Origin: Macrostomum hystrix
Lineage: Eukaryota; Animalia; Platyhelminthes
DNA length: 64,000 nucleotides
Assembly: GCA_950097015.1 (NCBI GenBank)
Contig: CATNEN010000002.1
Span: 6,448,001 to 6,512,000, forward strand
Direction of reading: 5' to 3'
Part shown: one piece after another, positions 2,723-57,617 of the stretch
Layout: every line of letters begins with the position of its first letter
Position numbering within the stretch: position 1 is the first letter of the stretch
The notes under the pieces: generated by a model
What the model saw: the letters and a program-made list of their open reading frames with translations, nothing else
Databases searched by the model: none
Told to the model about the DNA's origin: nothing
Made by a program: the position numbers and the translations under genes

Positions 2723-3292
<570 letters not shown>

Positions 3293-6944: not shown

Positions 6945-7264
6945 TTGCACAGAGGCGGAGCTGAAATCTGACGCACAGTCCAAACGATGGTGCTGAAATG
7001 TCAGGCACCGCTGATGCCAGCGAGTTTATTTGCTTAATCGACTGTGACCAGCGGCAGCAGAGCTCGCACTTTTAATATGAACTGTTCCAACTGTTTTGTG
7101 TGCCAAGCTTTGATTCGAGTTAACTGTCTGGCTGAAAGCCTATGGGGTGAACTAGCCCAAGCAGGTCCTACTCAAAATCCACTTTCCGAATCATAGAAAA
7201 TGAAAAAATGAATGACACATCAGCTCATCGTTTACACACTTGCAACAGCACAACCAACATCCTA

Positions 7265-8620
7265 TGATCCCATCTCACTTTCATCCTTTGATCCCATCTC
7301 ACAATCATCCTTTGATCCCATCTAACAATCATCCTTTGATCCCATCTCACATTCATCCTCTGATCCAATCTCACTTTTATCCTCTGATCCCATCTCACTT
7401 TCATCCTCTGATCCCATCTCATGATCACCTTCTGATCCCATCTCACAATCATCCTCTGATCCCATCTCACTTTCATCCTCTGATCCCATCTCACTTTCAT
7501 CCTTTGATCCCATCTCACTTTCATCCTCTGATCCCATCTCACTTTCATCCTTTGATCCCATCTCACAATCATCCTTTGATCCCTTCTCACAATCATCCTC
7601 TGATCCCATCTCACTATCACCTTCTGATCCCATCTCACTTTCATCCATTGATCCCATCTCACCTTCATCCTTTGATCCCATCTCACAATCATCCTCTGAT
7701 CCCATCTCACAATCATCCTCTGATCCCATCTCACTTTCATCCTCTGATCCCATCTCACTATCATCCTCTGATCCCATCTCACTATCATCCTCTGATCCCA
7801 TCTGATTATCATCCTCAAATCCCATCTCACAATCATCCTCTGATCCAAACTCACTATCATCCTCTGATCCCATCTCACTATCATCCTCTGACCCCATCTC
7901 ACTATCATCAATTGATCCCATCTCACTATCATCCTCTGATCCCATCTCACTATCATCCTCTGATCCCATCTCACTATCATCCTCTGATCCCATCTCACTA
8001 TCATACTATGAACCCATCTCACAATCATCCTCTGATCCCATCTCACTTTCATCCTCTGATCCCATCTCACTTTCATCCTCTGATCCCATCTGATTATCAT
8101 CCTCAAATCCCATCTCACTATCATCCTCTGATCCCATCTCACTATCATCCTCTGATCCCATCTCATGATCATCCTCTGATCCCATCTCACTATCATCCTC
8201 TGATCCCATCTCATGATCATCCTCTGATCCCATCTCACTATCATCCTCTGATCCCATCTCACTATCATCCTCTGATCCCATCTCACTATCATCCTCTGAT
8301 ACCATCTCACTATCATCCTCTGATCCCATCTCACTATCATCCTCTGATCCCATCTCACTATCATCCTCTGATCTCATCTCACTATCATCCTCTGATCCCA
8401 TCTCACTATCATCCTCTGATCTCATCTCACTATCGTCCTCTGATCCCATCTCACTATCATCCTTTGATCCCATCTCACTATCATCCTCTGATCTCATCTC
8501 ACTATCGTCCTCTGATCCCATCTCACTATCATCCTTTGATCCCATCTCACTATCATCCTCTGATCTCATCTCACTATCGTCCTCTGATCCCATCTCACTA
8601 TCATCCTCTGATGCCATGAT
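7265..8620. repeat. 24-bp minisatellite, block 2 (same unit as 4870-5565)
   Basis: Same unit with ACT/ACA/TGA/CTT variants. Confidence 0.97.
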
Positions 8621-11134
8621 AACTATCATCCTGTCTATGGTCTCACTGTCCTACCCCGATCCCATTTCTCTGACCCCTGATCTAATCCCATCTAATCTCA
8701 ATCCCATATTAAATCTCCCTGATTGTCCAGATCCCTAAGTGTTAGTTCCAGAAGTCCAATGTAATGATTGCCTATAGTGAACTGTATTTGGCACTGTGGC
8801 TGGGGCGGCAAGGCGCACAGGGAATGGCAGCCATTATTTTTATATCGTCGAGTGCCTGAACTGCCGGTAGCCTCTGCCCAACGACCCACCAGTTGTGATT
8901 GTTGAACGATTCTCCGGGGAGTAGGTCATAGTTCTGCTGATTGACAAACCAAATGAGACCCGAAATATGAGGGGGAGACATTGCTGCAGTGGGAAAATGG
9001 GATATACGTGAGACAACTTCAGTGCTGTAGCTATAATGCCAATTTTAGATTCAGCTTTTCAATGAGGCTGGCAAAATAAACGATTCAAAAGAGTGCTAGT
9101 CGATAAAAGTGCACGCGAATGTCGTTCAATGTAGTCATGCATCAATATGTAATAGCCAGTGCAGTCAGGGCAGATGTACACACCTGTGTGAGATTTTGTG
9201 CTCAAGGTTGAGCAGAATGGCTGTGCTTACTGCCACGAATTTTGATTGGTCTTTGTTGCTTTTAGTGCTGTTTTCCAGAGCTGAAACATTTTATGTTTTA
9301 CTGCCAGTATTTTGTATGGCCAAACGAGAGGCCACTTTGTTCTGAGCTCTCATCCGAGGACCACTCGATCCCCCCGCCGTCTCAGATGTCTCCCAAAGGG
9401 ATATTAATCCCAAATATTCGGAGCGACTGAGGCAAGTGCTCAATCCTTCATCTGGTCCTCTTTGGTGTCAGGAAGAGAGCCCACAGAGGTATAGAGTGAC
9501 TCGAACTTATCTTCATACTCCCGCACTGAGGCAGGTTTATGTATATTTTTTCAATCAAACAGAAGCTCAGAAGTTGATAAAGTCCCTGATAACAGGCCAT
9601 CCCACTCTGTGTGTGTGCACAGTGTGAGCTCACAGAGACTGAAGTGTGTGAAGGAAATTTCGTCCAGCCTTTCAGTGCAGGGACAACAGTGGAATTCAAA
9701 GCCATCTTTGATTTGAGATTGTGCGAGCTGTAGGGGACAGGCACAGCGGAGGAGAGCCAGACTGCCTGATAAAGAGGCAGTATTTGCCAATACCTCTCCC
9801 GGCAGCAGCAACAGCTTCGGCAATTTTTTTCTGGTGTGTTTTTTTTGCCGCCGCGATAATTCGGGGCAGCGGGAAACCTCAGCCGAAAATCAAAGATCTT
9901 GCCGGAGCGATAAACTGTGCAGACAGCCATTGCAGGCAACCTTCTTAATAGCGGCGGTGATAAAGCAACTGCGACACTGAACCCCACACACACCCCACAC
10001 ACACCAGCTGTCGTTAAAATTCTCTTACTGATGAAGTTTTGAAATGTAATTAAAAATCCAGACTCTAATACACTGACTGAGGCTTTGGTAAGTCATGGTT
10101 TAGCTGCAGCTTCGGCAATTAAAAGTATTCATGTTTCCTAGTGCAAGCATCACTGAATAAATTTATAGGGCCTGGAACTCCGTGGTTTTATGTTTATGCT
10201 GAATTCACAAAGGACTTTTTAAGGATCTTATACTCGTAGGTCCCCGAGAGGTCGAAAGTTCGAAAATAATTGAACATCAGCTGGACCACCCAAGCTTTCT
10301 CGGCCCCTAAAAACTGAATGCCGCCTCGAACCCGTGACAGCATTATTATTTGCTTCGATTTTGTTGATCGGCAATGCCGAAACAGTTGGCAAATCCAGCT
10401 CTCATTGCAGCTACTGTGAGCTGACCCCAGCGGCCCTGAGAGGCTGGCAGGCTGAATCCGGGATTTCGAGGACACCACGCGCTGAGTGAGAAGCAATTGA
10501 GCAGGCGGTGAAAAATCTGCAGCAAAAATCCTAACCGAATTCGTCCCCACTTCTTCTCAACTCGCCCCCGCAGCCCCGAGGGGGACTCCGGCTAGTCCAT
10601 GGGGCGCTTTTGCCCAGATTTGAGCACACTGCTCACAAGCCTAATTTTTGGCACCAAAGCTCCGCCTGCCTGCTCTGCAGTGTGAACTCAAACAATTAGA
10701 GCTGGGAATCCAATGCAATGAGTCGCCTGGAGTGGCCCAGCCGGCTAAAAAAGGTCTTCTCGGGCAAAGCCTGTCGAGAAATCCTCCACTACCCCATGAC
10801 AACGAAAAATACCCAGCATTTTGTCTTTCCTCCCTTCTCTCTCCCGCTGGTGCTTTCGCGCAGATCCGCGGCCACCGGGACGAGAGCCGATCGAATTTTG
10901 GTCCGCACCAACTCGATTGAGATGCCTGAGCACAGGATGAACTACTCGCGTTGTGAGCTCCCAGTTGTGTTAGTTTGCTAATGCAGTGGCGATGCTCAGA
11001 GAAGGCTGGAGAACTTGATTTTCTAGTTTTCGAATTTCTCACAAATGAGAGAGGTCTTTGTCCATGAGCTGGGAGACAATGCAGTTCACCCAGCTGCGAG
11101 AAATGTCCATTATTTTACTTATGTTATCAGAAAT

Positions 11135-37523: not shown

Positions 37524-37949
37524 TCAAAAGTGCTCACTCGGACGCAGGTAGAGCAGTCGGTACACCGAGTTACGATCGCCTGCTCCGCAGATCTGGCTGC
37601 CATCTCCATAACAAGGCTTGTTGCAGTCGGTGGCAGCTGCAACGCCCTGACTGCCGTAAGAGTTGCCGCAGAAGCAGTGGGCTCCATTCTGGACACCAAA
37701 GTAGACAAAGCTGCCGATGCTGCAGATGCTGCTGCACAACTGCAGAGTCATAGAATGCATAAATACGCTCTTTTGGGCTGTGTTCACGCTGTAGGACCCG
37801 ATGGTGGACATGCCGGCCAGGCCGGCAAGGTCCTTGACACTGCCAGTGTTGTCCACGTAGCAGCCGATGGGACCGAACTCAACGGCCAACATGCAGCGAA
37901 GGACCGAGCAGCAAAGCAGTTGGCGGATGAGAACAGCAAGTAGTCTCAT
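37524..37949 (-). CDS. Secreted single-WSC-domain protein, 141 aa
   Basis: Hydrophobic N-terminus; IGCYVD...MTLQLCSSIC...YFGVQNGAHCFCG...CNKPCYGD..ICG...RNSVY with the WSC cysteine pattern. Confidence 0.88.
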   Translation of the reverse strand: MRLLAVLIRQLLCCSVLRCMLAVEFGPIGCYVDNTGSVKDLAGLAGMSTIGSYSVNTAQKSVFMHSMTLQLCSSICSIGSFVYFGVQNGAHCFCGNSYGSQGVAAATDCNKPCYGDGSQICGAGDRNSVYRLLYLRPSEHF

Positions 37950-38688
37950 TGCGCAGACCTTCGTCTTGTTATGAGTTTTTTTACAGTCTCCGTTAGGTTG
38001 GACTGATGCGATCCTATTCATTTATTATGTTTATGCCAGACTTAATTTTTTGGCATTGAAGAGAAATAAATTGGAGTCTGAATCGGTTGCTAAGCGATGC
38101 TGACAAAACTGTTCACTTCCCCCTCCCCCGTGCCACTGACGTGTTGCGCATTCAGTTTCTGTAGCCTACGGGCCTGCCCTGTCCTATAGGGGCTCATTAA
38201 TAATATAGTAGTGGGACTTGGAAACAGCCGATGTGGTGTGTGTTGCTATGTAAGCTGGCATAAGCATTATAGCGAGGATAATGTGGATGGAAAGCAGGAA
38301 ATTTAGATTTTGATTTGCAACTGGCCGGATGCTGCCTTGCGCGTGTTCAGAGAAGTTGCACGCTTCAGTTAAAAAAAGAACTTTAAAACTGAGTTGCAAC
38401 CATTAAAACAAAAATAACTGTACAATAGCACCGTACTATTCAACATTATTTCTGTGTTTGGTTCAGAGATTCGGATGCCACCATGGACTTGAGGGGACCC
38501 AGCGGTATTTATGTTTTAGGGACACAACAGTTCCCAAGTACAAGCCGGAATTGGAATCTAGCAATTGGAGTGCAGTCAGAGACCGTTAATCATCATCAAA
38601 TATTTATCATTTTCTCATTATCGTTTATCATTATCATTTTCTATTTTCTCTGTGAAACTGAAAACTAAATACGATTATATAGGCCAGA

Positions 38689-38952
38689 TAATAGACCTTC
38701 CACCAGCCCGTCACTCCGCATTCTATCCAGCCACTGCCAGATTATAGACCTTCCACCAGCCCGTCACTCCGCATTCTATCCAGCCACTGCCAGATTATAG
38801 ACCTTTCACCAGCCTGTCACTCCGCATGCTATCCAGCCACTGCCAGATTATAGACCTTTCACCAGCCTGTCACTCCGCATTCTATCCAGCCACTGCCAGA
38901 TTATAGACCTTTCACCAGCCTGTCACTCCGCATGCTATCCAGCCACTGCCAG
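38689..38952. repeat. 53-bp tandem repeat, 5 units
   Basis: ATAGACC recurs at 38691, 38744, 38797, 38850, 38903. Confidence 0.95.
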
Positions 38953-39520
38953 CAATCTCTCACCTGTCATTAAACCCGTGGCTTAGTACAAAAGCAGTCA
39001 CCCAGTCTGTTAAAAATGTGGGCATGAAGCAGCAGCTGTCAGTGCATGCACCCGACTGTGCTCAGGGCGGTGAGAAGTTTCCCAACAAGCCTCGCGTGGC
39101 TCCCGTCTCACCTGAATTTTGTGTCGAGCAGAGCTGCTATTCTGCAATCCTTGAGCTGCTTAGCCGTGATGAGCTACCGCGCGTGCCTCTGTGATAATTC
39201 CGACGACAATTTTTGTCTCGTGAGCTCCACAGTGCTCGACAGGCTGTGCTCAGGTCCCGGGCTTGACTCAAAGAAACTGTCCGCGTGTAACAAACCTATC
39301 GATCAGGGATGGGATCAGTATCCTAAGGAGTGGGGATTCATGCCAAGTCATGGGGATTCATGTCTGGCTGAGACAAAGCCCGACCCCAGTCAGGCTCGGC
39401 GGTCTATGATTGGCTAGAGGCCTGAAATCGATGCGTTTTCTGAACCTCTCGATTTCAATCCAGTTTCGTGTGTGATTTGAGAAAGTCGAACAATGAATAT
39501 GCTTTTTAACACACTGACAT

Positions 39521-42229
39521 GTCCGTAGCCGCCTTCCAGCCGCACCGAAATTTTAAATGAGTGCCCCAGGTGTAATTTTAATAAAAATAAATCACACATG
39601 CTCTTAATTTATTGCCCCAAAACATGTTTCGCATGGTCGATGCTGTTTCTATGAAAATCTGACAGTGAAAGTTGGCTTTAGGGCGGCTGAAGGGCGGCTG
39701 GAAGGGGGCTAGAGAATATTGCTCTGTATTGGCGCAGTAAAATTGTGCCCCAAATGGAAAAAAAATTGAATGAAGTCTTAACTTTAATATGCACAATAAA
39801 CTTTGGTTGATTGGCTTTTATTTATTAGAGAAGTGTGACCTTTAGTTTGAAATTCAGCATTCCAATAGGTAAAAGCGTGCCCCAACCATTTTCTTGACTA
39901 ACGGCTAATGCCCCAATGCGGTAAAAAGAAGCAGGGTCAAAATTTTACTGTATATGTAAATTTCTGTACATGCCCCACAATTTCCAAATGAGTGGCGAAG
40001 TGAAATAACTTGATTGTCACTCAGACACCAGTCATTACGACTTACAGTTGAGATTACGACTTTGCAATCGTAAAAAATAAATTCTAACTTGTTGCAAAGC
40101 TTGAGCAACGTGCTCGATCTGATGCAGACCTATATGGCTATATGTCACGTTTTAATTTTAGTTTTCCTAGTTTCTAGTTTTCAGGTTTTAATACCAGTTT
40201 TCACCGACAAGTTTTTAAACTTATCAGAATGTAACTGCCCCACAGACTGTTTAATTGGCAGCAAAAATTAAGAGCTCTTAGTCTTAGTCTTGTTACAAAT
40301 ATATAATTTATATCACTCATGCATAATTTATATCACTCATGCAGGTCATGGACCAATACTAATAGACTAATGGACCAATTCATAAATTACTATCAATGTG
40401 ACAATGCCCATGTTGATAGATATGTAATTGTATGTGTCCTTTAGAAATATTAAAAACTGGCATGACAATTGTCACTTTAAGATTGTAATCAAATCACTCA
40501 ATATATTATATAATCTATATCTATGCCTATGTATATTAACACTCAGTAATAATAATATTTCAAACAATAATAGCTAGCTATGGCTATATATACAGAATTC
40601 TACATATGCACCTTCTTATGAATTATGTCAGGACATATGACTCAAATTTATTCAGGATATGATGCATGCAACTAGAGGAGCTTTATATTAAATCCAACTT
40701 TATTGTCACTTTTCTAAACAATTAACAAAGTAATAATAATACTAGGCCTAATAGCTAGACTAGCTATTGATATTAAAAAATACAAAAGTCTAGTAGCTAT
40801 TTACAATCTATTTTCTATTTTCTATTTCTATTCTATTTACAAGTTAGGCCTTGATGCCTTACAAGCTAAGTATTACCATTAGCTTCGATATAGTTAGAAC
40901 GCTTCTCTTTTACTCATTCCTAGCTAACTAACTTGGAAAAAATAAGTTCAATAGGCAAAACTTTTAGTCTTTTTTTAATTAATATACATATTGCTATGGC
41001 ACATTTTTAATACACTTGTTTGAGTTACAGGTCTGGAATGTAATATATTCTTTAAATCAATAACAAAAATAATTGTATCAATCTCCAAATTATATTTGAT
41101 AGATAACTCATATTCACAAAATCTGTCTCTGTGTATAATATACACTCGACATCAAGTGCTTCCATGTTAGTTTCACTCGTGCCTTTTAAGTTTTATATCT
41201 CAGTAATGTATATCATATAAACATGATAATTCATGTTTTTCAAGTTTCTTCTCAATATCTGCTAGTTCCACTCATGTCCTTTCATATCTGAGTAATGTAT
41301 ATCATATAAACATGATAATTCATGTTTTTCAAGTTTCTTCTCAATATCTGCTACTTCCACTCATGTCCTTTCATATCTGAGTAATGTATATCATATAAAC
41401 ATGATAATTCATGTTTTTCAAGTTTCTTCTCAATATCTGCTACTTCCACTCATGTCCTTTCATATCTGAGTAATGTATATCATATAAACATGATAATTCA
41501 TGTTTTTCAAGTTTCTTCTCAATATCTGCTACTTCCACTCATGTCCTTTCATATCTGAGTAATGTATATTATATAAACATGATAATTCATGTTTTTCAAG
41601 TTTCTTGTCAATATCTGCTAGTTCCACTCATGTCCTTTCATATCTGAGTAATGTATATCATATAAACATGATAATTCATGTTTTTCAAGTTTCTTCTCAA
41701 TATCTGCTAGTTCCACTCATGTCCTTTCATATCTGAGTAATGTATATCATATAAACATGATAATTCATGTTTTTCAAGTTTCTTGTCAATATCTGCTACT
41801 TCCACTCATGTCCTTTCATATCTGAGTAATGTATATCATATAAACATGATAATTCATGTTTTTCAAGTTTCTTGTCAATATCTGCTACTTCCACTCATGT
41901 CCTTTCATATCTGAGTAATGTATATCATATAAACATGATAATTCATGTTTTTCAAGTTTCTTCTCAATATCTGCTAGTTCCACTCATGTCCTTTCATATC
42001 TGAGTAATGTATATCATATAAACATGATAATTCATGTTTTTCAAGTTTCTTGTCAATATCTGCTAGTTCCACTCATGTCCTTTCATATCTGAGTAATGTA
42101 TATCATATAAACATGATAATTCATGTTTTTCAAGTTTCTTCTCACTATCTGCTACTTCCACTCATGTCCTTTCATATCTGAGTAATGTATATCATATAAA
42201 CATGATAATTCATGTTTTTCAAGTTTCTT
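39521..42229 (+). repeat. Left terminal inverted arm (~2.71 kb) including 12 x 89-bp units (~41195-42270)
   Basis: Reverse complement of 48293-50733; ACATGATAAT recurs every 89 bp from 41221 to 42200. Confidence 0.95.
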
Positions 42230-42496
42230 CTTAATAGCTGCTAGTTCCACTCATGTCCTTTCATATCTGCGTAATAATTCATGGTTTTCCTGTTTTTTCT
42301 TATCTTCAATGCTAGGATTCACTTAACCAAGTCCAGTATTTGCTTAGTAGAGTTTGTTTAAGTAAGAAAAAGTAAAGTAAATAAGAGTGTACACTTGTCT
42401 TTTATGTCACTATATTTCTGTCAACGCTTTGAAGTTATTTTCGATGTTATGGATGCATGTTTTTGCATGTAATAAAAGTTATATAATTTATTTCAG

Positions 42497-43459
42497 GCTT
42501 TCATTAACGATCCTTTTTCGGTCTTTGAGCAAAAAGGAGAACTGCCCTTACCCTTTCCCGACAGGGAAGTGGTCGTCGGCATCAGACTAACAGCGACTTG
42601 TGTTCGTGTAGCTGCTCAGATCCTAAACATTCCACTGTCCGGTTCTCTACTTCGAAGGGCTCATGGAACGAATGTCAATTATATTTCGGAAAATGGTTTA
42701 GCTCTGGCCTACCGTGATGGTGTAGCAATTTTTCGACATAGAAAAAAATCATCGAATTGTCACCAAGACCATTCCAAGCGAGCGAAAGCGGCTGCTGCCG
42801 GAAAGGAGTGGTTGAAACATAATGGTTGGAAGTTGGAAGAAGAGAGTTCGCAGCTTTCAGCTGTGATTGCAAAGCAGCATGTAACAAAGGCACTTGATCA
42901 TCTGGAGTTGGCTGTATCCGTAGGTCCTGATGAAATACGTAGTATAATTAAAATATCTGTTGCGTGTGTGCATCAGGTAAAAAATGTGATTGATTCTGCT
43001 CAATTGTCTACTGCGAGGGGAGCAGAATTTGAGCAGGGAGAGTCAGAAGTGGAAAAGCAGCGAGAAATGGAGAAGCAGCGAGGACTGGAGCAGCAGCAAG
43101 AGCAGGAGAAGCAGCGAGAACTGGAGAAGCAGCGAGAACTAGAGAAGCATCGAGAACTGGAGAAGCAGCAAGAGCAGGAGAAGCATCGAGAACTGGAGAA
43201 GCAGCGAGAACTGGAGAAGCATCGAGAACTGGAGAAGCAGCGAGAACTGGAGAAGCAGCAAGAGCAGGAGAAGCATCGAGAACTGGAGAAGCAGCGAGAA
43301 CTGGAGAAGCAGCAAGAGCAGAAGCAGCGAGAGCAATTATCTTTATCGAGAAAGCGATCGGCAAAATTTGTGAACGCTGACAAGAAAGACGGAAATACGT
43401 CAGCCAAAATAAGTCGCACAAGTAGGCCTTTGCGCCCAAGACAAAAGTTCATCAACTAA
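42497..43459 (+). CDS. Transposon accessory ORF2: possible Bro-N-like N-terminus plus E/K/Q/R coiled-coil repeats and basic tail; start exon not resolved
   Basis: Acceptor tttatttcag at 42496 opens a 321-codon frame; repeats based on GAGAAGCAGCGAGAACTG. Confidence 0.6.
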   Translation, partial: AFINDPFSVFEQKGELPLPFPDREVVVGIRLTATCVRVAAQILNIPLSGSLLRRAHGTNVNYISENGLALAYRDGVAIFRHRKKSSNCHQDHSKRAKAAAAGKEWLKHNGWKLEEESSQLSAVIAKQHVTKALDHLELAVSVGPDEIRSIIKISVACVHQVKNVIDSAQLSTARGAEFEQGESEVEKQREMEKQRGLEQQQEQEKQRELEKQRELEKHRELEKQQEQEKHRELEKQRELEKHRELEKQRELEKQQEQEKHRELEKQRELEKQQEQKQREQLSLSRKRSAKFVNADKKDGNTSAKISRTSRPLRPRQKFIN

Positions 43460-44478
43460 ACTTATGTTGCTAATTGCAGGGACGAGAATAATTTGATGAT
43501 TTTTGCGAACTTGATGAATGCGCTTTTGTGCAATCGAAACTTGTGAATTTAACTCAATAGCTCAATGTCAATTAAGGGATGTACTCCTTATGCTTCATGT
43601 TTATGCGTACGAGTTGCCATACGATCTTACGCAGGAGATAGCGGACCCCTGATACCAATAGTACTACACTTTTTTATTTAGCTTTCGCTTTGATGTGTTT
43701 TGATATACGAGCGTACAATGTTTGACGACTTGATCGTAAGGTGAAATGTTTAACCGTGTGAGCTCTCCATTATTATATTCTATTCTATTCTATAGTACTC
43801 GTATATTATGTTTATGACTACTGACAAAACGAATAAACGAGTCGGACCGTCAAAATCTGATTGGAAAATATTCAGAACCGGAACTTGAATTTATCTTATG
43901 AACTTGCCTTATGCATTTGGGCCCGATGGTAAGTTCAATAATGATCAACACCTTGGGCATACAAGGTAAAACAATACATACAAGGCGCACGAGCGTACTA
44001 CATTGCTATTTAATAAAAAAGATAGTAAAATCAGGCGCTATCAAGCACAATAAAGCCTTCCTATCCTAAGAAGTCATGCCAACGGATTCATAGTCAGTTA
44101 AAAGGTTAATCGATTAATGTGCAGAATGTTTCGTGTGCACCCTGACTAATCAATCCTGTTTATAAGAGATATTAAAAATATTGTAGGAACCGATGATCTA
44201 GTGGCAACGACAAACTACTTAACAAAACGATAACTGGATTAGTAGGATTAGTAGCCGCAAAAATTATGATACATATCTGGGTCATTTATATAGAAAAGAA
44301 AGTAAAAGCAGTGATGTGACGAAAAGAATAAGAAAAGGCGCAGAGACAAAGACATTTTGCCATTTAAGCAGGGTGCGGCGGGAAGACGCCTTCATGTGGG
44401 TGCATGGTATGACATCAGACATGAGTAGGCACTGGTAAAGCGAAAACCCGTAGCTTATCCAAGCACTAGCGAACATAT

Positions 44479-47400
44479 TTAAAACAAAGCGTACATCGCC
44501 AGGTTTAGGCGACCTACATTTCGTTGCCGTCGCAGCGCACCACTGGTAGTCCCGAGGTCGTCATAGTTTAGGACGCTACCATCGTCAGAATGTATAGTTG
44601 CTACCCAGTGCGCACGCTCTGCTTGAAAGTATGTCGAGCAGAACAGTCTGTATCTATAAAAAATTTAGTTTTACGTAACATAATGATACATTTAATTTAA
44701 TAAACAAGTTACTTATTGAACAAAAATTAGTGTCTATTTCTAGTAAAGTCAATATCTAGAACCGCAAATGTGTTCTCCGTCTGACAGCATAAAAATTGTA
44801 CTCGTAGCTTTACTCGGACTACTCAACGCTTTAGGGACTACGGCCTTACAGGTACCCTTGATATTTTTTACCAATAAGTAAAATAATAGTTATCGACAGT
44901 GTATATAAAAACTACAAGTACTTGACACTTCCTTTTTCGGGTCCAGCACAGCAGCCCTGCATTAGCTAGGTGACACAAGTAATCAGACGATAGAAGAGTA
45001 CATATATAGAGTGCAAGAACTCACCGAGCAGGGCTGTTTCGAAAGGGAGTTACCTCTCGTTCTCCCAACGAGACTCGAACAGTTCTATCGACAGAGTCGG
45101 GTACAGCAACAACAAGCAGCGGAGGCAATTCTGAGGAGTACGTCGGTGGCAATACATCTCGCAAACTGTTGCAGTGGCAGCATTCCCGAACGCCAGACTC
45201 ACGGAAAACAGTGCAGATAAAGCTGTAGGGTGACTCGATTGGCCCTTCCTCGTGTTGGATTACAAGCCCAGAAAAAAATGATTCCAGTTGTCGATGGCGG
45301 CAGGCATCGTTGCGGCAGATGCTTCTTATCAGGAATAAATGGCTATTTCCAAGTAACTCCAGAACTATGTCCAGTTCGCTGCTTTCGAGATTTCCGTCAA
45401 CGATGCTGCTACCGTTTCGCCGCCAACGCAGAAAGCCTTTGCGCCAGAATGACTCTGTTTGTACTATCAGTGTAGCACGGGCATGCATGGCTTCTTGATC
45501 GGTGCGGCTAGCGGTAGCTTCTCTGCAGTACCGGCCTAGCCGATGAAGATCTTGAAGTCGAGACGCCAAAATGGCTTCACGGAATGTCTCGCGATCTCTA
45601 TATGCAAATGCAATACCAGTGAGGAACCCATCAACAGTACAAGTGTTGTGCAGCATTACTGTTACGAGTTTCCCATTAAAAGGTACACTGGTCGAGCGGC
45701 CACCATTTTTTAGAAGAGTAAATTGTTCCTGTGCATGATTTGTTAGGTCTCGAAGGAGAACACGCGTCGTAGCTGCAGTGTAGCGTCCTGAAGTGACCCT
45801 TCGTTTTTTATTAACTACCTCGGAGCTCAGCGAAGTTTCTTCAGTCGCTTCGTGGTCATTTAGCATTGATGTGAAAGGGTTCCTGAAAGAACAGGAGCCC
45901 TGTAAGTTAGAAATACGAGCATCGCCATCGATTTCAGGCTGATCGGGGTGACTGGAACTGGGATTCTCTGACTGCTCGTCGGTGTGACTAGAAGTCTCTG
46001 GCTGCTCAGGGTGACTGGAACTGGAGTTCTCTGACTGCTCGTCGGTGTGACTAGAAGTCTCTGGCTGCTCAGGGTGACTGGAACTGGAGTTCTCTGACTG
46101 CTCGTCGGCGGTGTGACTGGAAGTCTCTGGAAGTTCCATAAAGATCCGATGCAACCCCTGCAGGAACCGACTTTGGTTAGCCAAGAAGTTCCTCATGGAG
46201 CTGTCCCGACCCCCGTGAAGCAGGTTTTTAACGATATTCATCCAGAGCTCCGTGTGGCCTTCCGTGAATCCCTCAGCGTCACGAGAAACACTTTTGAATG
46301 CACCGCTATTGGACGCAGCATATCTCACGGGATCCAGCATGATACCGCACCAAAGTGGCAGGTATGGCATCACAACATTGGTAAGTTTACCAGCGAGACT
46401 GGGGCAGTAGTACGGATTCGGATCTGGTGTCAGTTCACTCTCACTTTGAACAACTTGTGCTTCGGCACTAGCTTTCACCTCATTGTGCAATGCATCCGCT
46501 AGATGGAAGAATGGCGAAGCTCTCTTCAATGTCGTATCCGGCATTACGTACATGAAACTTTCGGGTGGAACGAAAACTCCGTCTTCAAGTTGATCTGCAG
46601 CGGCTGCGTGCAGAAGAGCGAGTGACGAGTCGACACTCCTCCGGGATGGGCAAAGCAGAAGCCGTAGAAAGCTTTTGTACACTTGCTGTACCTGGTGCAA
46701 GCTGGTGCATCGTAGCAAGGCACCGAAGAAATGCTTCCAACCATTCCTGGCTTCCGGATTCCTGCAATTCGCCACATCAGGCCAATCACAAAACTCGCGC
46801 ATGATATGGCTCCGGCCGAAGCCGATCAACGTAAATTTCTGCAGTTCTTGATAGCTTAATTTAAACGATAGAACGGCATAGCAGTGCCGCAGAAAAGGAA
46901 TGATTTCCATCCCGTGAATGCCCATAAGGAGAGCCCGCAAAGTAGGCAAATTAAAATCGAGGGTGACCTGAGCCACGCGAAGATTTTTTACTGATAATCT
47001 TGCTGCCGTGATCCAGGAGTCAAATACAAACTTTAAAGTTGTTCCCGTCTGCGAAGACGATAAAAGTTCCATAACGGCAACGGGTTGCGCTCCAGTTTGA
47101 GGATGACGCAGTACCACAGCGTGGTAGTAAACATCCTTCTGCTGACTGTCTTTGGGTTTTGAAATAGGCGCTCCGGTTGAATCCATGCCCAGTACGATTG
47201 GCTTACTGTTCGCTTGCATCGAACGCAACACTTCAAAAGCACTGTTCAACCAAAGAGGCACGAATTGGGGTTCCGATGCGCCAAATTGCACACAGACATT
47301 CCTTGCGTAAGCAGGTTGCATGCTCTGTCCTTGAATAATAAGATCCAGCAGAGTATCAGACGACTGCCGGTCCTGATGTCGTTGCCTACTCGCAGCAATT

Positions 47401-48195
47401 CGTAGTACATTAGGAGATGGCAACAACCGAGTGTCCTCATCTGCTGCGATTTCTGCCCTTACCCGCGTGGCACTTGAAGAGCAAACTCTTTTGGCCAATT
47501 CAATACGTCGCTCCCCACATAGAGGACGTGCCTTGGTAGCATGCTTAGTAGGATTCGTTTTGACTTCAAGCGAACAGAGCAACCTGTTTCCAGAGTGGAG
47601 CACTTTCAAACGGAATAGGCCAGTGCAACCATCAACATTGCAGTAAACATCTGCAGATATGTAGCCTGCATTGTGCTTATGCCTGCGCATACACAGGGTG
47701 CACTTAAGTGATGAAGAGAACGACAGAAGAACATAGTCGTGCCAGCTCTTTTTCAGATTGCCACTACCATCGAAAACGTGGTCAATGTCAACGAAGCTTT
47801 GGTGTAATTGCGTTTCAGCTGTTGTACTGCTGGAAGACCTGAAATCAAAACGAAGAAGGCGAAATTATAGATGACTATGTATAAGAAAAGCCAAAGTAAG
47901 AGCGCATCAAAAAAAGCAATACTTACGCTGTATTGCTCGGTATCTCACTCAAAGAATATCCGGTGATGACAGCCTGAACTTCAGCGATGATATTGCTTCT
48001 TCTGAATTTGTCATAGAGCCATCTGCGACTTGATTCGTTAGTGCCATCAAGACCAAGTAAATCAGCAAGTCTCTGAAGTATGCCATTCGCATTACGCCAA
48101 GTAGGAATCCCAGCGGAAAACTCAGCAACATCAACCTGACCAGATACAATGACCTTCTTGATGTCTTCCAGGGTCACTGAGCTAGTGAAATTCAT
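44479..48195 (-). CDS. NOF-like MULE transposase fused to a USP-like peptidase, ~1085 aa; exons 48195-47927, 47838-45025, 44653-44479
   Basis: MDSTG (D, 47181-3), YYHAVV, TLDFN (D, 46956-8), GRSH at the CxxH position, NPYYCP, YLPLWCG, HTELWMNIVK (E, 46248-50); NTCTVD Cys box; AHWVATI..YDD His box; two phase-2 gtaagt/gtgagt introns give 3258 nt in frame. Confidence 0.85.
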
Positions 48196-48292
48196 GGTAA
48201 GTGACAATATCGACAATCACTTGAAAGGCCTGAAATGGAATAATCATAGAGGCTTTGTTTGCATCCTTGAGTGCTAATATGATACACATCAT

Positions 48293-50733
48293 AGAAACTT
48301 GAAAAACATGAATTATCATGTTTATATGATACACATTACTCAGATATGAAAGGACATGAGTGGAACTAGCAGATATTGACAAGAAACTTGAAAAACATGA
48401 ATTATCATGTTTATATGATATACATTACTCAGATATGAAAGGACATGAGTGGAAGTAGCAGATATTGACAAGAAACTTGAAAAACATGAATTATCATGTT
48501 TATATGATATACATTACTCAGATATGAAAGGACATGAGTGGAACTAGCAGATATTGAGAAGAAACTTGAAAAACATGAATTATCATGTTTATATGATATA
48601 CATTACTCAGATATGAAAGGACATGAGTGGAACTAGCAGATATTGACAAGAAACTTGAAAAACATGAATTATCATGTTTATATAATATACATTACTCAGA
48701 TATGAAAGGACATGAGTGGAAGTAGCAGATATTGAGAAGAAACTTGAAAAACATGAATTATCATGTTTATATGATATACATTACTCAGATATGAAAGGAC
48801 ATGAGTGGAAGTAGCAGATATTGAGAAGAAACTTGAAAAACATGAATTATCATGTTTATATGATATACATTACTCAGATATGAAAGGACATGAGTGGAAG
48901 TAGCAGATATTGAGAAGAAACTTGAAAAACATGAATTATCATGTTTATATGATATACATTACTCAGATATGAAAGGACATGAGTGGAACTAGCAGATATT
49001 GAGAAGAAACTTGAAAAACATGAATTATCATGTTTATATGATATACATTACTGAGATATAAAACTTAAAAGGCACGAGTGAAACTAACATGGAAGCACTT
49101 GATGTCGAGTGTATATTATACACAGAGACAGATTTTGTGAATATGAGTTATCTATCAAATATAATTTGGAGATTGATACAATTATTTTTGTTATTGATTT
49201 AAAGAATATATTACATTCCAGACCTGTAACTCAAACAAGTGTATTAAAAATGTGCCATAGCAATATGTATATTAATTAAAAAAAGACTAAAAGTTTTGCC
49301 TATTGAACTTATTTTTTCCAAGTTAGTTAGCTAGGAATGAGTAAAAGAGAAGCGTTCTAACTATATCGAAGCTAATGGTAATACTTAGCTTGTAAGGCAT
49401 CAAGGCCTAACTTGTAAATAGAATAGAAATAGAAAATAGAAAATAGATTGTAAATAGCTACTAGACTTTTGTATTTTTTAATATCAATAGCTAGTCTAGC
49501 TATTAGGCCTAGTATTATTATTACTTTGTTAATTGTTTAGAAAAGTGACAATAAAGTTGGATTTAATATAAAGCTCCTCTAGTTGCATGCATCATATCCT
49601 GAATAAATTTGAGTCATATGTCCTGACATAATTCATAAGAAGGTGCATATGTAGAATTCTGTATATATAGCCATAGCTAGCTATTATTGTTTGAAATATT
49701 ATTATTACTGAGTGTTAATATACATAGGCATAGATATAGATTATATAATATATTGAGTGATTTGATTACAATCTTAAAGTGACAATTGTCATGCCAGTTT
49801 TTAATATTTCTAAAGGACACATACAATTACATATCTATCAACATGGGCATTGTCACATTGATAGTAATTTATGAATTGGTCCATTAGTCTATTAGTATTG
49901 GTCCATGACCTGCATGAGTGATATAAATTATGCATGAGTGATATAAATTATATATTTGTAACAAGACTAAGACTAAGAGCTCTTAATTTTTGCTGCCAAT
50001 TAAACAGTCTGTGGGGCAGTTACATTCTGATAAGTTTAAAAACTTGTCGGTGAAAACTGGTATTAAAACCTGAAAACTAGAAACTAGGAAAACTAAAATT
50101 AAAACGTGACATATAGCCATATAGGTCTGCATCAGATCGAGCACGTTGCTCAAGCTTTGCAACAAGTTAGAATTTATTTTTTACGATTGCAAAGTCGTAA
50201 TCTCAACTGTAAGTCGTAATGACTGGTGTCTGAGTGACAATCAAGTTATTTCACTTCGCCACTCATTTGGAAATTGTGGGGCATGTACAGAAATTTACAT
50301 ATACAGTAAAATTTTGACCCTGCTTCTTTTTACCGCATTGGGGCATTAGCCGTTAGTCAAGAAAATGGTTGGGGCACGCTTTTACCTATTGGAATGCTGA
50401 ATTTCAAACTAAAGGTCACACTTCTCTAATAAATAAAAGCCAATCAACCAAAGTTTATTGTGCATATTAAAGTTAAGACTTGCATCTAATTTTTTTCCAT
50501 TTGGGGCACAATTTTACTGCGCCAATACAGAGCAATATTCTCTAGCCCCCTTCCAGCCGCCCTTCAGCCGCCCTAAAGCCAACTTTCACTGTCAGATTTT
50601 CATAGAAACAGCATCGACCATGCGAAACATGTTTTGGGGCAATAAATTAAGAGCATGTGTGATTTATTTTTATTAAAATTACATCTGGGGCACTTATTTA
50701 AAATTTCGGTGCGGCTGGAAGGCGGCTACGGAC
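48293..50733 (-). repeat. Right terminal inverted arm (~2.44 kb) including 9 x 89-bp units (48293-~49060)
   Basis: ATTATCATGT recurs every 89 bp from 48312 to 49024. Confidence 0.95.
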
Positions 50734-52274
50734 ACGAGCTTTTCTAAGAAAAAATACTTTAACGAAAAACTGCTTCAGAAAATTGAATGCCATCCAGCAC
50801 TCCACATGCCACTCCACTTGAATTTCTGTAGATGCTTCTTCCGAAAGCATCTTTTTCAACTCCGCAGTGAATTTTCAAAGGGATCGCATACGAGTCAATG
50901 ACTGCCAGCCGGTTTTTTAGTCAATTTAGTAATACGAGTAAATAACTGCCAGCCACAGCCCAACTGCCATGCGTCTCAGTGAATGCAATTCAAGCTTGGT
51001 TAATTCCGAATACAAAACTCAATGGAAAATTGGCAAGCATTGACTGGCAGCTGCGGGACCAAGGACCACTAGTAGATAGATAGATAGATACTCTACTTGA
51101 GTAGTCCGTGTTAAAACCTAGCCATAATTGGCCTTAATTAAAGAACGAAGCGAAACTGTGTCAGTATACTATTTGGGATTGGTTGTGAGAGCAGTCTAAG
51201 GCTTATTGCCTCTCGCACCATGGTCTCTGAGTTCTATTTAAAGCAGAAAGCAGTACTACCACTGGAGCAGTATTTAAACTAAAAAGTTTCCTCTTTGCAC
51301 CCGCCAATACTGGCCAGCGGTCAGCGGGCCAAGAAGCTTCAAGAGAACGCGCTGCGAGAGCGGCTGGAGGAGGCGAAGAGGCGTCATCTAGAAGCTGCGG
51401 CCAAACGACACCATAAGGAAGTGTCCGTGGAGCTGCTGCCGCCAGTCAGCAACCAGGATTCCGAGGTGCAGCAGCTGGATCTGATTGTTATCGATGCGAG
51501 CTGCCAGCCGACGGACCTGCTGCTGGACTTGGATTGAACTCGAGAACTTCGTGAAAGCGAAAAGTGCGAATGTGGTTGCTAAACAGAAAAATCACTGTTT
51601 ATTCTGTTTGGCACTGTACAACTCTAGAGGTTCATTCAGAGTCCAAAGGATCATAACAAGAATATAAAAAGTGCTGTAGGAGAGTTCTTGGTAATATCTA
51701 ATTAATGGCTTTAAGGAGTTTGACCTCGATTGTCCAACTCATAAGTCATTGTCTTTTGCCGTTAAATTACGCCACACGGATCGCAGATAGGATCATACCG
51801 TTTGCTAACACTAAAACATATTGCATAACAAATTTATGTTGATGTTTGTATATTCAGATATTTATATATTAATAAATTATAGTTATGTTTATGTTAACAA
51901 AACGGAAATTTTACGTTGTTTAATTTTGTATAAAAAAAACTAAAATGAAGCACAAAAACAGATGCAGAAGTAAAAGTATGCAAACGCATACACAATAACG
52001 GTTTTAAGAATCTTTAAACTTCTTGAATTAAATTCTTGGCCTCAATGCCTCACAGTTCTAAACGGCTATGGAACGTAAAAAATAGCATTAGCAGTGCAAA
52101 AAAATGTTAGAAAAAAAATTATACTATAAAATATCGCGCATGTTGATCCAGACTCAAATAAGATATGACCGTCAGCACTGGATTCTGTATATATAATGTT
52201 TCTTGTGTGCACAAGGTAGTTGCATAAGTTTGTCGTACGAGCTAACCCAAAATATTAGCGATCGTGTACAACGT

Positions 52275-52799: not shown

Positions 52800-55700
52800 T
52801 AGTAATAATAATAATAATAATCTCACGCCCCGCGCCGACCACAAGTGGCCAAAAAAAAGGGGGGGCATCAAATCGCGCGCTTCAGGGCAAGGTCTCTGAC
52901 GTGCTTCACGCCGGCTGCCTGGCTGGGTGCTCGCGCATCATCAAAAAGACGGTCGATGTAGCGAGCCGTTCGTCCCTGTCCGCGCCTGCGAGGTCCCTGC
53001 GGAGTCCACAGCAGGACTTCCTGCAGCGGCTCTGAGCAGTAGGCTTCGGCCCGGATGACATGCCCGGCAAGCCGCAGACGTCGCTTGCTCAGCAGGGCAG
53101 AAGGCCGCGTCAGGCGCGCTCGCTGGTACAGGGAGTCGGTCGTCTCTCTGCGGCGAGCGCCGAACGCGGCACGAACCAGAGCCGCATGCGCCGCGTCGAG
53201 CTGCCCCTCGAGCGCCCCGGTCAGCGTCCAGGTCTCAGCATTGTACAGGAGGGCAGTCTCGACAACAGCCTGGAACAGCTGGGACCTGGCGCTGTCCGAC
53301 AGGGCCTCCGAGAGCAGCACCGCCCGAACAGATCGAAAGGCGGCCCAGGCGGCCTTTCCGCGCCGTCTCGCCAGGTCGTCGCTCACGTCCGGCACCAGCC
53401 CGCCGAGGTAGAGGAACTGACGGCACTTCGGAGCACCGTCCCAGGGGCATCGCCGTCTCGGAGTCGGAGTCGGATCTCGGCGGGTAGATCGTGCGGCACC
53501 GTCAGCACCTCGGTCTTTTTGGCGTTGATGACGAGGCCGACCCTCGCAGCCGCCGCAGTCAGGCCATCCAGCAGCCTTTGGGCGCCTTCGGCCGTCGTAG
53601 ACAGCAGGGCGAGGTCGTCCGCGTAGCCGAGGAGGGACAGTCTCTTCTCCGGGTGTCGCCGACTGGTGCGCCTTTGCAGTAGAAAGCCGTCCTCTGCGGT
53701 CGGCAGGCCGATCCTGCACACCCAGTCCATCAGCAAAACAAAGAGGAAGGGCGCCAGAGTGTCACCCTGCAGCACTCCGGAGGTCGTGCTGAACAGGTCC
53801 GACGGTCCGTCTGGCGTCGCTACTGCAGCGGTGGTATCCTGGTACAGCGCCATGATGGCGGAGATCAGCTGCTGCGGTACGTTGTAAGCACGGAGCACGA
53901 GAGGCAGCGCGCCGCGGGCCACCGAGTCGAAAGCCTTGAGGAAGTCAACAAAGATGACAACTAGGCTTGACTGGTGGATGCGCGCTTCCTCGATGATGCG
54001 GCGGAGGGCCAGGATCTGCGTCACTGTGCCACGACGAGGCCGGAACCCGTTCTGCTCGTACCGCAGGTACGGGTCCAGCACAGGCTGTAACCGTGCTAAC
54101 AGCACCCGGTTGAAAAGCTTCGCAGCACAGGACATAAGCGAAATCCCACGATGCTCCTCCAACCGTGTGGTGCCCGGCTTCTTCGGGATGCCGACGATGT
54201 TGGCGTGGGTCCACTCGCGGGGCGCGGCACCTCCCGCAAGGACGCCATTCATCACGCGGGCCACCTCCGTGGCAACCCTTGTGACTCTCAGCGCCTCGAC
54301 GGGGACTTCATCCGGACCGGGGGCGCGGCCTCCCGGTGCCTTGCGAGCGAACTCCACAATGTCGGTGCTGGTCACTGGACTGGTGTCGAAATCTTCCTGC
54401 CGCGGCAGCGCCACCTCGGGGGGCAGCGGCATCTCGTCCGGCAGAGTCGGCGGTGGCGCGTTGACAATGGCGGCGAAAAAGGTGCGCAGCTCGTTTCTGC
54501 GTTTCTCTGCAGTGTCGCCGGTCAGGTTCAACGCTGCCTTCCTCTTGCGACCGGTGAGGGCGTTTACGACCGGCCAAATAACTCTGTTCTGCCGTTCAGG
54601 CCTGACAGACGCAACTGCTCGGATCGCGTCATCAACAGCGGATTGCTGTCGTCTCGTGTAGGCGTCTGCCAGGGCTTTCTCGGCGTCAGATGTTGGTCGC
54701 CTGGCACGTCGCAGTTGCTCGACTGTGCGGCGGGCTTCTCGGACCTCCGAGTCGCTCGCCCAAACCGGAAGCTGCCGTGACGCGGGCTCCATTAGCGGCA
54801 GAGTCTTGGCAGCGGCAGTGGCGATAGCAGAGCTGATGGTGGTGTAGTCTGGCGCCTGCGCTGATCCCAGGGCAGTCGCAAAGGCGTACGCAAACCTGCT
54901 GCGGGTGCCTTGGTCTTGCAGGGCGAGGAAATATCTTCTTCTGGGGCGTTTTGGCGGCCTGTACAGCGGATCGGAAAGCCGCACGTCGCAGTAGAGCAGG
55001 CGGTGATCGGACTGGATAGCCAAGGGTTCCACGGTGTCGCAGTTCTTTAGCCGACTGCGTTCACGGTAGCGGACCCGCACGTGGTCGAGCTGCGCCAGGC
55101 GGGTCGTGGTGAAACGGCCTCGTGCGTTCCGCCTCCTCCGCTTGCAGCCGGCGAAGGTCGCCAGCCGGTTGGGCGGTTTGCGGAAGCGCGTATTGGCCGA
55201 CACCAGGTCGAGCCTCGCCATCAGGTCCGCTAGCGCGGCGGTGTTGGCGTTCTGGCGTGGCGACACAAACGGGCAGCGCTGGGACCGTGACGCGACGGCA
55301 TTGAGATCACCAAGCACCACCATCTCGAGCTGCTCCGACAGGAACTCGTAGAATTCCTGCGCCTCCTGCTGATGGGCAGCCGTGGGGGCGTACGCACAGA
55401 ACAGCCGCGCATTGCGGCGACGTAGCCTCACATCTACGCGCAGCAGTCGGGCTGACAAGCTGATGCAGCAGACGCTCTCGCGTAGTCGTGGCCCGACGAG
55501 CACGCCGACTCCTCCGCGGCCTCTGCTGTCCGCTGACGTGTAGTGCAGCGTCCAGCCGGCCCCCAGATCCTCACGGTGTAGTCCAGGCTCGGCAGTGACT
55601 GACACCTCCTGCAGCATGACGAGGTCCAGCCGCAGGTCGGATGCCAGCTGCGCGAGCATGCCCCTTCTCCAGGCGGACTTCAGCGTTCGGCAGTTGAAAG

Positions 55701-56013
55701 TGGCTAGCCTTAGAGCGCGATTTGTAACAGCTGGGGCCCGGTGTTGGTGGGCCTCTCGGTCCCCGGCGCCACCCGGAGGAACCGGTTGTTCGTGGGTCAG
55801 CAGATGATTGTTGGCAGCAGACCGGCGGAGGTGGCCTTTCGTTCGCCCTCGCCGATTTCGTTCCCTTCGCCTCTCAATGCGGCGTTGGGTGCTTCGCTGT
55901 CCACGCCGGCCTCCCGTCCTGCCGCACTTGGCAGCCGCAGCACCGGGGCGCGGCTCTCCGTGTTGGCCGAGGCAAGCGCTGGAGGCTCCAGCGTCACCAG
56001 GAGGCGGCGGCAT
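52800..56013 (-). mobile_element. RTE-like non-LTR retrotransposon (APE endonuclease + RT), one frameshift near 53432, (ATT)n tail
   Basis: APE motifs ATFNCRTL, MLQEV, AYAPT, GDLNA, LDHV, SDHRL; RT motifs APGPDEV, RGISL, QNGFR, FVDFLKAFDSV, GVLQGDTLAP, YADD; C-terminus continues in ORF 52868-53719. Confidence 0.93.
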
Positions 56014-56244: not shown

Positions 56245-57617
56245 ATGTTTAGGATTAATCCATTGATTGATTTATCTGCGGATTTTGTCGGCGATTATGA
56301 TCCAAATGTTCTGTCCACCGAATATTTTGAGCGACTACTCAGCTCTGAAAATGATCTGAGTGATCCCTATGTGTTGAAAAAGTTGCGTGAAGAGGAACGA
56401 CAACAGTTGGAAGCCAGAGAGGGAGCTGAGTTTGGAGAAGGAATGCAAGTTGCACCACAAGTTACGGCTTCTGGGTCTTCAACTGCAGACGGAATCGAGT
56501 ATGATATTGAAGTGATAAAGCAACTCATGGCACAACAAAGTCGGTGAATACAGTCAATAGAAATCGCTGGGCGGTGAGTGTGTTTGACCGATAGAGACGC
56601 AGCAAGGCATATGACTGCAGCCGCGACGTGCATAACTTGGGCGATTCCGAGCTAAGCAAGTGTCCGTCCGTCTTTATTCACGAAGTGCGACGCGAAGATG
56701 GAATGAAATACCCTCCAAATTCACTGGTGTCACTGATTGCCGGCCTATAGCAGACAGTCCGTACAGTTCGTCAGGTCGACTTCTTCAGAGATGAGGCATT
56801 TCGAGGTGAATCTCTAGCTTTAAGAGAAAGCTTGGATGCCGCTATGAAGATCGGTACAAAGGAAGGACTAGGACTAAACAAACAGCACGCAGAGATTGTC
56901 AGCTACGCAGATGAAGAGAAGCTGAGGGACAATGTCCTGGGCAGCGAAACACCTGAGCAGCTCTTAAGGACACTCTTCTATCTAAACAGTTTGCACTTTG
57001 CCCTTCGGGGTGGTCAGGAACATAGTCAGCTGTCCATTGACCAATTCCGCCTCGAGGACAGAAACGGCAAGATGTGCCTTGTATACAAGGAGACTGAAAC
57101 CAAGACCAATGCAGGCGGTTTGAGTGACACTCGCTACGAGCCAAAGGAGGTCATCCAGTTTCCCAACGAGACTAACCCTCCTCGCTGCCACGTTCGATTG
57201 TTTCAAAAGCTCATGTCTGTAAGGCCGAGCGGCAACAAACGGTTCTATTTGCTGCCCGCCAAGACGCCTACGCACATTTGGTTCTCCAGTCGACCGATCG
57301 GAAAAAACCAGTTAAGCAAATTTCTAGCCGACATGTGCAAAACGGCTGGTGTCCAAGGCAAGAAGACCAGCCATAGTCTGCGCGCAACCTGCGCTACTAT
57401 ACTTTATCAATCTGGTATCGAGGAACAACAGATAATGGAGCGCACTGGACATCGGAGTGTCACCGGAGTGCGAACGTACAAGCGAACGTCGGATATTCGG
57501 ATTTGTCATTCATCGGCAGTCTTGGACAACAAGAAGCTTTGTGAGGTTGCTAAGGCGTTTGGTGCCAGCAGCTTTGTCTTCAACAATTGCTCAGTACTCG
57601 TAGTTATCAACAACTAA
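56245..57617 (+). pseudogene. Crypton-A-like tyrosine recombinase (DUF3504 type), inactivated
   Basis: FALRGGQEH, HSLRAT, TGHRS, YKR motifs intact; frame extends upstream through WAVSVFDR*, EVRREDGMKYPPNSL..GL*; stops at 56592 and 56748, frameshift near 56540. Confidence 0.85.

Follow-up and report, generated by a model that had tools for sequence, protein, structure and literature searches.

Foldback elements and the Macrostomum copy

In the maize Mutator element MuDR, the genes mudrA and mudrB are convergent and each starts near the inner edge of one inverted end. Foldback elements, most of which have been assigned to the Mutator superfamily, include Drosophila Foldback (FB-NOF), Tetris and Tm1 of root-knot nematodes; in their modular arms unique sequence lies outside and a tandem array inside, the array differing in copy number from arm to arm and from copy to copy, and their target-site duplications measure 8-10 bp. 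RepeatMasker's class name MULE-NOF is in use in published papers. FB-NOF has been reported to be non-autonomous, and Tetris is without a coding copy. Rehavkus elements, which are placed in or beside the MULE superfamily and are divergent enough to have been used as an outgroup to canonical MULEs, are characterised by a PHD finger, a 9-bp target-site duplication, long terminal inverted repeats and subterminal tandem repeats, and their hosts have so far been insects and one annelid; a preprint describes them as 'foldback DNA transposons' with variable subterminal tandem repeats. Here we describe an element of this kind from the flatworm Macrostomum hystrix, found within a stretch of 64,000 nucleotides (assembly GCA_950097015.1, contig CATNEN010000002.1, positions 6,448,001 to 6,512,000; the whole stretch is called the window below).

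We interpret the 11.2-kb region as a single cut-and-paste transposon that belongs to the Rehavkus/Foldback branch of the Mutator (MULE) superfamily, and put the probability of this reading at about 0.85. The original prediction, made from the letters of the window alone, had proposed a foldback-type Mutator element that encodes a full-length transposase and, convergent with it, a second gene, and the protein fold, a second copy and a 9-bp duplication agree with that proposal. It had further taken the family as one not described in this kind of host; the host phylum is indeed new, but the kind of element is already known as a Rehavkus MULE foldback, so that the novelty is limited to the host phylum and the picture of which element kinds exist is unchanged. 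The locus extends the Rehavkus/Foldback branch of Mutator to flatworms, and a literature search turned up no publication that deals with Mutator or Rehavkus in Macrostomum. Coding-intact foldback copies appear to be uncommon in the literature, and an open gene of 1,085 amino acids (aa) under purifying selection is a useful reference. The element may also serve as a tool for transgenesis or mutagenesis in Macrostomum, a regeneration model.

The two inverted arms (39520-41961 and 48293-50734) each measure 2,442 nt, and their complementarity is 100%. They are AT-rich, with a G+C content of about 30% compared with 40-49% in the central region between them, and the inner end of each is made up of an 89-bp tandem array. 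Every 89-bp unit contains the palindrome AAACATGA-TAAT-TCATGTTT, as read from the consensus given by Tandem Repeats Finder (TRF). The 28-nt terminal sequence is found within the 64-kb window only at both element ends, with 0 occurrences expected by chance. Comparison with both ends of the second copy described below places the true left terminus at 39513 (ACTGACA..., ACTGACATGTCCGTAGCC), 7 nt beyond the perfect repeat; by contrast with it, the right terminus is without these outermost 7 nt (ACTGACA), which are present at the other three ends examined.

Multi-kb inverted arms with tandem arrays enclosing the genes had been predicted, and this architecture was recovered on both sides of the element. 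The accompanying description as near-intact holds for the genes, whose frames are open, but not for the ends, where the right terminus is 7 nt short and a duplication is lacking. Similarly, the genes had been said to begin at splice acceptors just inside the arms; acceptors were found with their AG at 42495-42496 and at 48230-48231, but these positions lie just inward of the arms and not within them. From left to right, and with ORF2 standing for the second, convergent open reading frame (ORF), the features are as follows.

39513-41190, plus strand: left arm, outer unique part, including the true terminus ACTGACATGTCCGTAGCC
39562-40236, left arm: seven copies of the subterminal motif TGCCCCA(A), within the outer 720 nt
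39682-39710, left arm: inverted internal copy of the terminal motif TAGCCGCCTTCCAGCCGC
41191-42275, plus strand: left-arm tandem array, 89-bp unit, 12.2 copies, 97% matches (TRF)
42276-42496, plus strand: stretch before ORF2 that closes with the acceptor TTTCAG (AG at 42495-42496)
42497-43459, plus strand: ORF2, 320 aa and stop, convergent with the transposase gene
43460-44478: spacer of about 1 kb between the convergent 3' ends, 95% identical to the second copy, with indels
44653-44482, minus strand, with the stop at 44481-44479: transposase exon 3, carrying a predicted USP-like His box (H1043, D1059/D1060)
47838-45025, minus strand: transposase exon 2, with an N-terminal zinc-finger-like module, the DDE core, a 63-bp coding repeat, a Cys box and a zinc ribbon
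48195-47927, minus strand: transposase exon 1, ATG at 48195, 89 codons and 2 nt
48196-48292, minus strand: 5' leader from the right array to the transposase ATG, with a TTTCAG acceptor (AG at 48231-48230)
48293-49063, minus strand: right-arm tandem array, 89-bp unit, 8.7 copies
49064-50734, minus strand: right arm, outer unique part, ending ...GGCGGCTACGGACA, outer 7 nt missing

The arms follow the modular plan of FB-NOF, Tetris and Tm1; unlike FB-NOF and Tetris, the element has an open 1,085-aa transposase gene. With MuDR it shares the superfamily and the two convergent genes near the inner arm edges, but ORF2 is not a mudrB homologue, and the arms are ten times longer than the Mu terminal inverted repeats and carry tandem arrays. 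The published size of Rehavkus elements (4.9-18.5 kb) includes that of the window element. However, Rehavkus terminal inverted repeats are tabulated at 26-412 bp, far shorter than the arms of 2.4-2.8 kb found across both copies here, and the published summary gives one ORF compared to two genes in the window.

A second whole element (L001) was found at an unrelated site in Macrostomum lignano, in assembly GCA_002269645.1, on the contig that encodes the annotated protein P0001. It has both arms, both genes and 89-bp arrays of 7.2 and 5.2 copies; its arms are 99.5% identical to each other over 1,894 nt, and its inverted repeat extends over the counterpart of 42276-42382. Both of its ends begin with ACTGACATGTCCGTAGCC, and it is flanked by a 9-bp direct repeat, CCTAGTCAG, which has a chance probability of about 4e-6 and constitutes a target-site duplication within the 9-11 bp range of MULE/Mutator elements, whereas the window copy itself has none. 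The original prediction had allowed that the inverted arms could be an assembly artefact and had looked to other copies with the same termini and a duplication. As the same termini, the same arms and a 9-bp duplication are found at a second locus in an independent assembly, the arms are therefore no assembly artefact and the family has transposed.

The M. lignano copy is decaying, with a premature stop in the transposase at the codon matching R897 and a nested long interspersed nuclear element (LINE). This LINE (L001:6949-9894) is 5'-truncated, lies between the 89-bp array and the transposase gene, and carries an 856-aa ORF for reverse transcriptase and RNase H at 7215-9785. The arms differ by 4-6% between the two copies but by 0-0.5% within a copy, and they therefore evolve in concert; a 253-bp segment (40104-40356) occurs in the two window arms but is missing from both arms of L001. 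Concerted evolution of the arms, together with variable tandem arrays, is how such elements seed satellite DNA.

Comparison of the two copies also reveals selection on the genes. In the transposase coding sequence, 33 of 3,123 sites differ between the window and L001, with 19 synonymous and 13 non-synonymous changes; the ratio of non-synonymous to synonymous change (pN/pS) is 0.21 and the synonymous excess has a binomial p of 1.4e-5. Identity is 98.9% for this coding sequence compared to 94-96% for introns, spacer and arms. Given the synonymous excess and the better conservation of coding than of non-coding sequence, the transposase has therefore been under purifying selection while the lineages diverged. 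For the non-repeat part of ORF2, a pN/pS of 0.44 on 12 changes is suggestive only.

The transposase and its Rehavkus-type core

Before splicing, the minus strand shows open frames of 947 codons and, upstream, 97 codons. With canonical GT-AG introns, the sequence reads as a stop-free gene of three exons for a protein of 1,085 aa, as had been anticipated in the original prediction of a spliced, stop-free transposase of about 1085 aa on that strand. The exon 1/2 junction is the same as in P0001, a protein that is 93% identical to the window protein overall and 97% identical over matched stretches, a similarity that by itself would point to M. lignano or a very close relative as the host. For exon 3, the encoded protein is 100% conserved in L001 and the preceding intron is 94% identical. 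The 63-bp coding repeat of exon 2 (45937-46130) remains in frame, with 3 copies in the window compared to 5 in L001.

Relatives were sought by running HMMER in full against 1.84 billion representative proteins, and at a cut-off of E<=1e-3 the window protein has 254 relatives there, at 20-30% identity. Alignments of these relatives contain near-invariant D, D, H and E columns within the motifs DATG, DFSW, CxAH and TNxxVExW, and the corresponding residues of the window protein are D309 (47183), D384 (46958), H434 (46808) and E620 (46250). Among 20 relatives looked up by cluster, one comes from the loach Triplophysa rosa, and another, P0032, is deposited under a bacterial metagenome-assembled genome (Sedimenticola sp.), probably through eukaryotic contamination of the bin. 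No long inverted repeats were found in the contigs of three relatives (L002-L004), whose short-read or metagenome assemblies are unsuited to judging foldback form.

With 104 sequences as input, AlphaFold modelled the core (residues 110-730) at a pLDDT of 85 and a pTM of 0.79. The model begins with a four-strand sheet bearing Cys/His ligands, which may be a WRKY/GCM1-like zinc finger, and continues into an RNase-H-like core in which a long helical domain is inserted between the second D and the E. The window protein has such an RNase-H-like DDE core with all three acidic residues. Foldseek matched the model to RAG1, ISCth4, the P element transposase, Transib and Hermes, and the fold is closest to the IS256/Mutator-type transposase ISCth4, in line with the RNase-H/MULE fold that the original prediction implied. 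ISCth4 (IS256 family; PDB 6xgx, 6xg8, 6xgw) differs in being bacterial, about 400 aa long and without a peptidase domain, and its sequence identity is 6-7%. By sequence, the window proteins gave nothing meaningful against Pfam and nothing in PDB searches with single sequences and profiles. A word-indexed protein search (single sequence and profile) matched the M. lignano copy alone, low-complexity words having probably filled the candidate list.

The assignment to Rehavkus comes from ordered motifs in this core. The supplement of Dupeyron et al. (2019; PMC6446971) provides the DDE domains of six Rehavkus references (Rehavkus-1_TC, -3_TC, -1_HR, -2_NVi, -1_DY and Rehavkus1_AP), and eight blocks are common, in order, to these references and to the 104-sequence consensus: LxLDATGS, YYYAxVV, PVxEMxSxxH, VVTDFSxAxInA, LCxAHfxK, SPFY, PLWs and RxsNxxVExxFxxxK. 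The blocks can also be made out in the window protein. Five relatives (P0088, P0098, P0099, P0100 and P0102), which served as proxies, contain Rehavkus words almost exactly and in the expected order, and they match the window protein with phmmer E values of 1.4e-8 to 6.4e-8.

In a maximum-likelihood tree of 88 cores, from which P0088 was left out, the other four proxies fall in two separate places, and the clade of the window protein (11 rows, SH-aLRT 98), which shares no more than 29% identity with any other core, lies between them. Because it sits between two Rehavkus-like groups, the whole set of relatives is best called Rehavkus-type, and within that set the window protein founds a lineage of its own. 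Further likenesses to Rehavkus are the 9-bp duplication in L001 and the long inverted termini with subterminal tandem repeats, whereas a USP-like C-terminus and the host phylum set the window element apart.

The C-terminal domain, the second gene and a possible mechanism

Beyond its core, the transposase is predicted to end in a USP-like cysteine peptidase. The window domain, in likeness to peptidases of the USP family, has a Cys box (NTC), a zinc ribbon of the form CxxxxC...CxC and a His box that reads HW...YDD. It comprises C823 (45641), the ribbon cysteines, H1043 and D1059/1060, the H and D being encoded in exon 3, and relatives have a conserved NTC box, zinc ribbon and, wherever the frame runs on, GHY...YDD box. 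The part of the domain encoded in exon 2 was modelled without exon 3 and reached a pLDDT of 81, and its top Foldseek rows were almost all members of the USP family (USPL1, USP14, USP21 and USP18), with probabilities up to 1.00 and a best E of 2.6e-3. Unlike these peptidases, the window domain is fused to a transposase and its match is below Pfam thresholds (Peptidase_C98, E 0.036 on exon 3).

Accessory domains differ among the 105 relatives compared with Pfam, where Ulp1/C48 was found in 15, PHD in 14 and UCH in 7, and OTU, C98, YqaJ nuclease and HMG box once each. This suggests that accessory modules have been repeatedly swapped between ubiquitin-like-protein peptidases and chromatin readers. 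Variation of the C-terminal module itself (Ulp1/C48, USP/C19-C98, OTU, PHD) may point to a need, met again and again, to reverse a ubiquitin-like modification placed by the host, such as one that serves transposon silencing.

The convergent second gene that had been predicted on the plus strand corresponds to ORF2. Its frame starts directly after the acceptor TTTCAG|G, no ATG occurs in its first ~150 codons, and its counterpart in L001 is a called gene of 405 aa, 5'-partial, that starts exactly at the same acceptor base. An 18-bp coding repeat (43045-43335) in the C-terminal half encodes EKQRELEKQ heptad-like repeats, a predicted coiled coil, with 16 units in the window compared to 30 in L001. 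At E<=0.01 no homologue of ORF2 was found, and no Pfam family matched; the same homologue search gave no similarity to mudrB, and in view of this lack of detectable relatives ORF2 is therefore no mudrB homologue. Judged by its sequence, ORF2 would be an orphan, predicted coiled-coil protein.

The spliced leader of M. lignano ends in ...TTGCATG, about 30% of its genes undergo trans-splicing, and the acceptors used for this have the motif [T/C]TNCAG. The AUG of ORF2 may thus be supplied by the flatworm spliced leader, which would open the frame M-A-F-I-N-D. At the transposase gene, where the TTTCAG acceptor lies 34 nt upstream of the ATG, the leader AUG would open a short upstream frame only. 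The original prediction had suggested MuDR-like convergent transcription driven by the arms; for both genes, the acceptor sites fit spliced-leader trans-splicing at least as well as they would fit such putative promoters.

A possible mechanism can be outlined from these parts. Repeats at and near the ends of both long inverted arms would be recognised by the 1,085-aa protein, the candidate sites being the terminal motif TAGCCGCCTTCCAGCCGC with its inverted copy at 39682-39710, the seven TGCCCCA(A) motifs and the palindrome in each 89-bp unit. The RNase-H-like DDE core of the protein (D309, D384, E620) would cut the element ends, and integration at a 9-bp staggered target break would leave the 9-bp duplications. 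The putative USP-like peptidase could free a protein of the host or of the transposon from ubiquitin or SUMO and so aid escape from host control. The coiled-coil product of ORF2, read from an AUG donated by the flatworm spliced leader, could act as an accessory factor. That the transposase needs its built-in ubiquitin/SUMO deconjugase and that the second gene also relies on the spliced-leader AUG, tying the element to host trans-splicing, is a joint proposal that we regard as rather unlikely. The fused USP-like peptidase and the ATG-less ORF2 nevertheless offer testable leads on how transposons handle host control.

Alternative readings and the neighbourhood

Several observations weigh against the assignment to the Rehavkus/Foldback branch or against parts of it. 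The Rehavkus match was made motif by motif and through proxy matches, and the window protein has neither a PHD match nor a PHD-like Cys pattern, although PHD is a listed Rehavkus feature. The window protein has no Pfam match to MULE or to any other transposase family, and in the best relative (P0006) the MULE family PF10551 reaches only E 0.0021 and 18.9 bits, below the cut-off of 27.6. In the C/DxxH motif, for which the relatives' consensus is HxCxAHxxK with a near-invariant His (H434), the window protein reads GRSH and the Cys is absent. The exon 2/3 junction, promoters in the arms and trans-splicing are predictions read from the sequence. Furthermore, only two copies have been seen, the window element and L001, and the window copy has no flanking target-site duplication and a right end that is 7 nt short.

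These last two features lend weight to the most serious alternative, in which the window copy is a dead end: it would encode its protein, but the damaged terminus would bar excision and re-insertion, leaving a relic and not an autonomous element. The ACTGACA missing from the right end is found at the left end and at both L001 ends. The left-flank 9-mer TTTTAACAC has no other occurrence in the window, including to the right of the element, and the window copy is therefore without a duplication. The right flank is rich in transposable elements (a LINE ORF at 53383-56013 and a Crypton-like recombinase at 56832-57617), which makes a rearrangement plausible. On the other hand, the 100% identity of the arms and the open state of all ORFs indicate that the copy is very young, many DDE transposases cope with altered outermost bases as long as subterminal sites remain, and the protein could still mobilise other copies.

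We give the dead-end explanation a little less than even odds. What is observed is a copy with intact genes and one damaged end. With the 7 nt missing and no duplication present, this member of the Rehavkus/Foldback branch may therefore be immobile; it may not move itself, and it probably supplies transposase in trans.

A different superfamily that combines a DDE core with a Ulp/USP-type peptidase (Zisupton/KDZ), or a P or hAT transposon with foldback-like elements such as Galileo, is very improbable. Zisupton duplications measure 8 bp compared to the 9 bp of L001, and 0/105 relatives match the Pfam families of KDZ, hAT or P-element transposases. The only transposase-type Pfam matches among the 105 are weak MULE, the MULE-derived RNaseH-like domain of ZSWIM1-3 and one rve at E 0.007, and the motif-by-motif match points to Rehavkus and not to Zisupton, P or hAT. 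Zisupton/KDZ had been a first guess, made from the peptidase tail, and was dropped on account of the 9-bp duplication and the absence of a KDZ match among the 105 relatives.

Least probable of all is that the region is not mobile and represents an inverted segmental duplication or an assembly artefact around a domesticated, transposase-derived host gene: assembly polishing could have produced the perfect identity of the 2.4-kb arms, purifying selection on the transposase would also be expected of a domesticated gene and the lack of a duplication in the window copy would fit, but the same arms, termini and both genes stand at an unrelated locus of another assembly with a clean 9-bp duplication, that copy decays through its premature stop and nested LINE as transposon copies do, and the arms are 4-6% diverged between copies while near-identical within each.

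The neighbourhood of the element in the window is rich in repeats and other mobile elements. To its right, a minus-strand ORF of 876 aa (53383-56013) encodes an APE-type endonuclease (Exo_endo_phos, E 1e-8) and a reverse transcriptase (RVT_1, E 2e-29) and belongs to a non-LTR retrotransposon, which lies in an unusually G+C-rich stretch (57-65%). It is followed on the plus strand by a 261-aa ORF (56832-57617) with DUF3504 and Phage_integrase matches, a Crypton-like tyrosine recombinase. At the left end of the window, positions 1-1865 form a G/A-rich satellite that is strongly strand-biased (GC skew 0.93), consists of the 13-nt motif GGTAGATAGAGAT and runs off the window end; it has a higher-order period of 39/117 bp, with about 48 copies of the 39-mer. 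To the right of this satellite, (TAGA)n occupies 2723-3292 and an array with a 24-bp unit spans 4868-5564. Closer to the left side of the element, a 53-bp tandem repeat is present in 5 copies at 38683-38952, and a minus-strand ORF of 165 aa (37524-38021) with a WSC carbohydrate-binding domain (E 6e-16) is probably an exon of a host gene.

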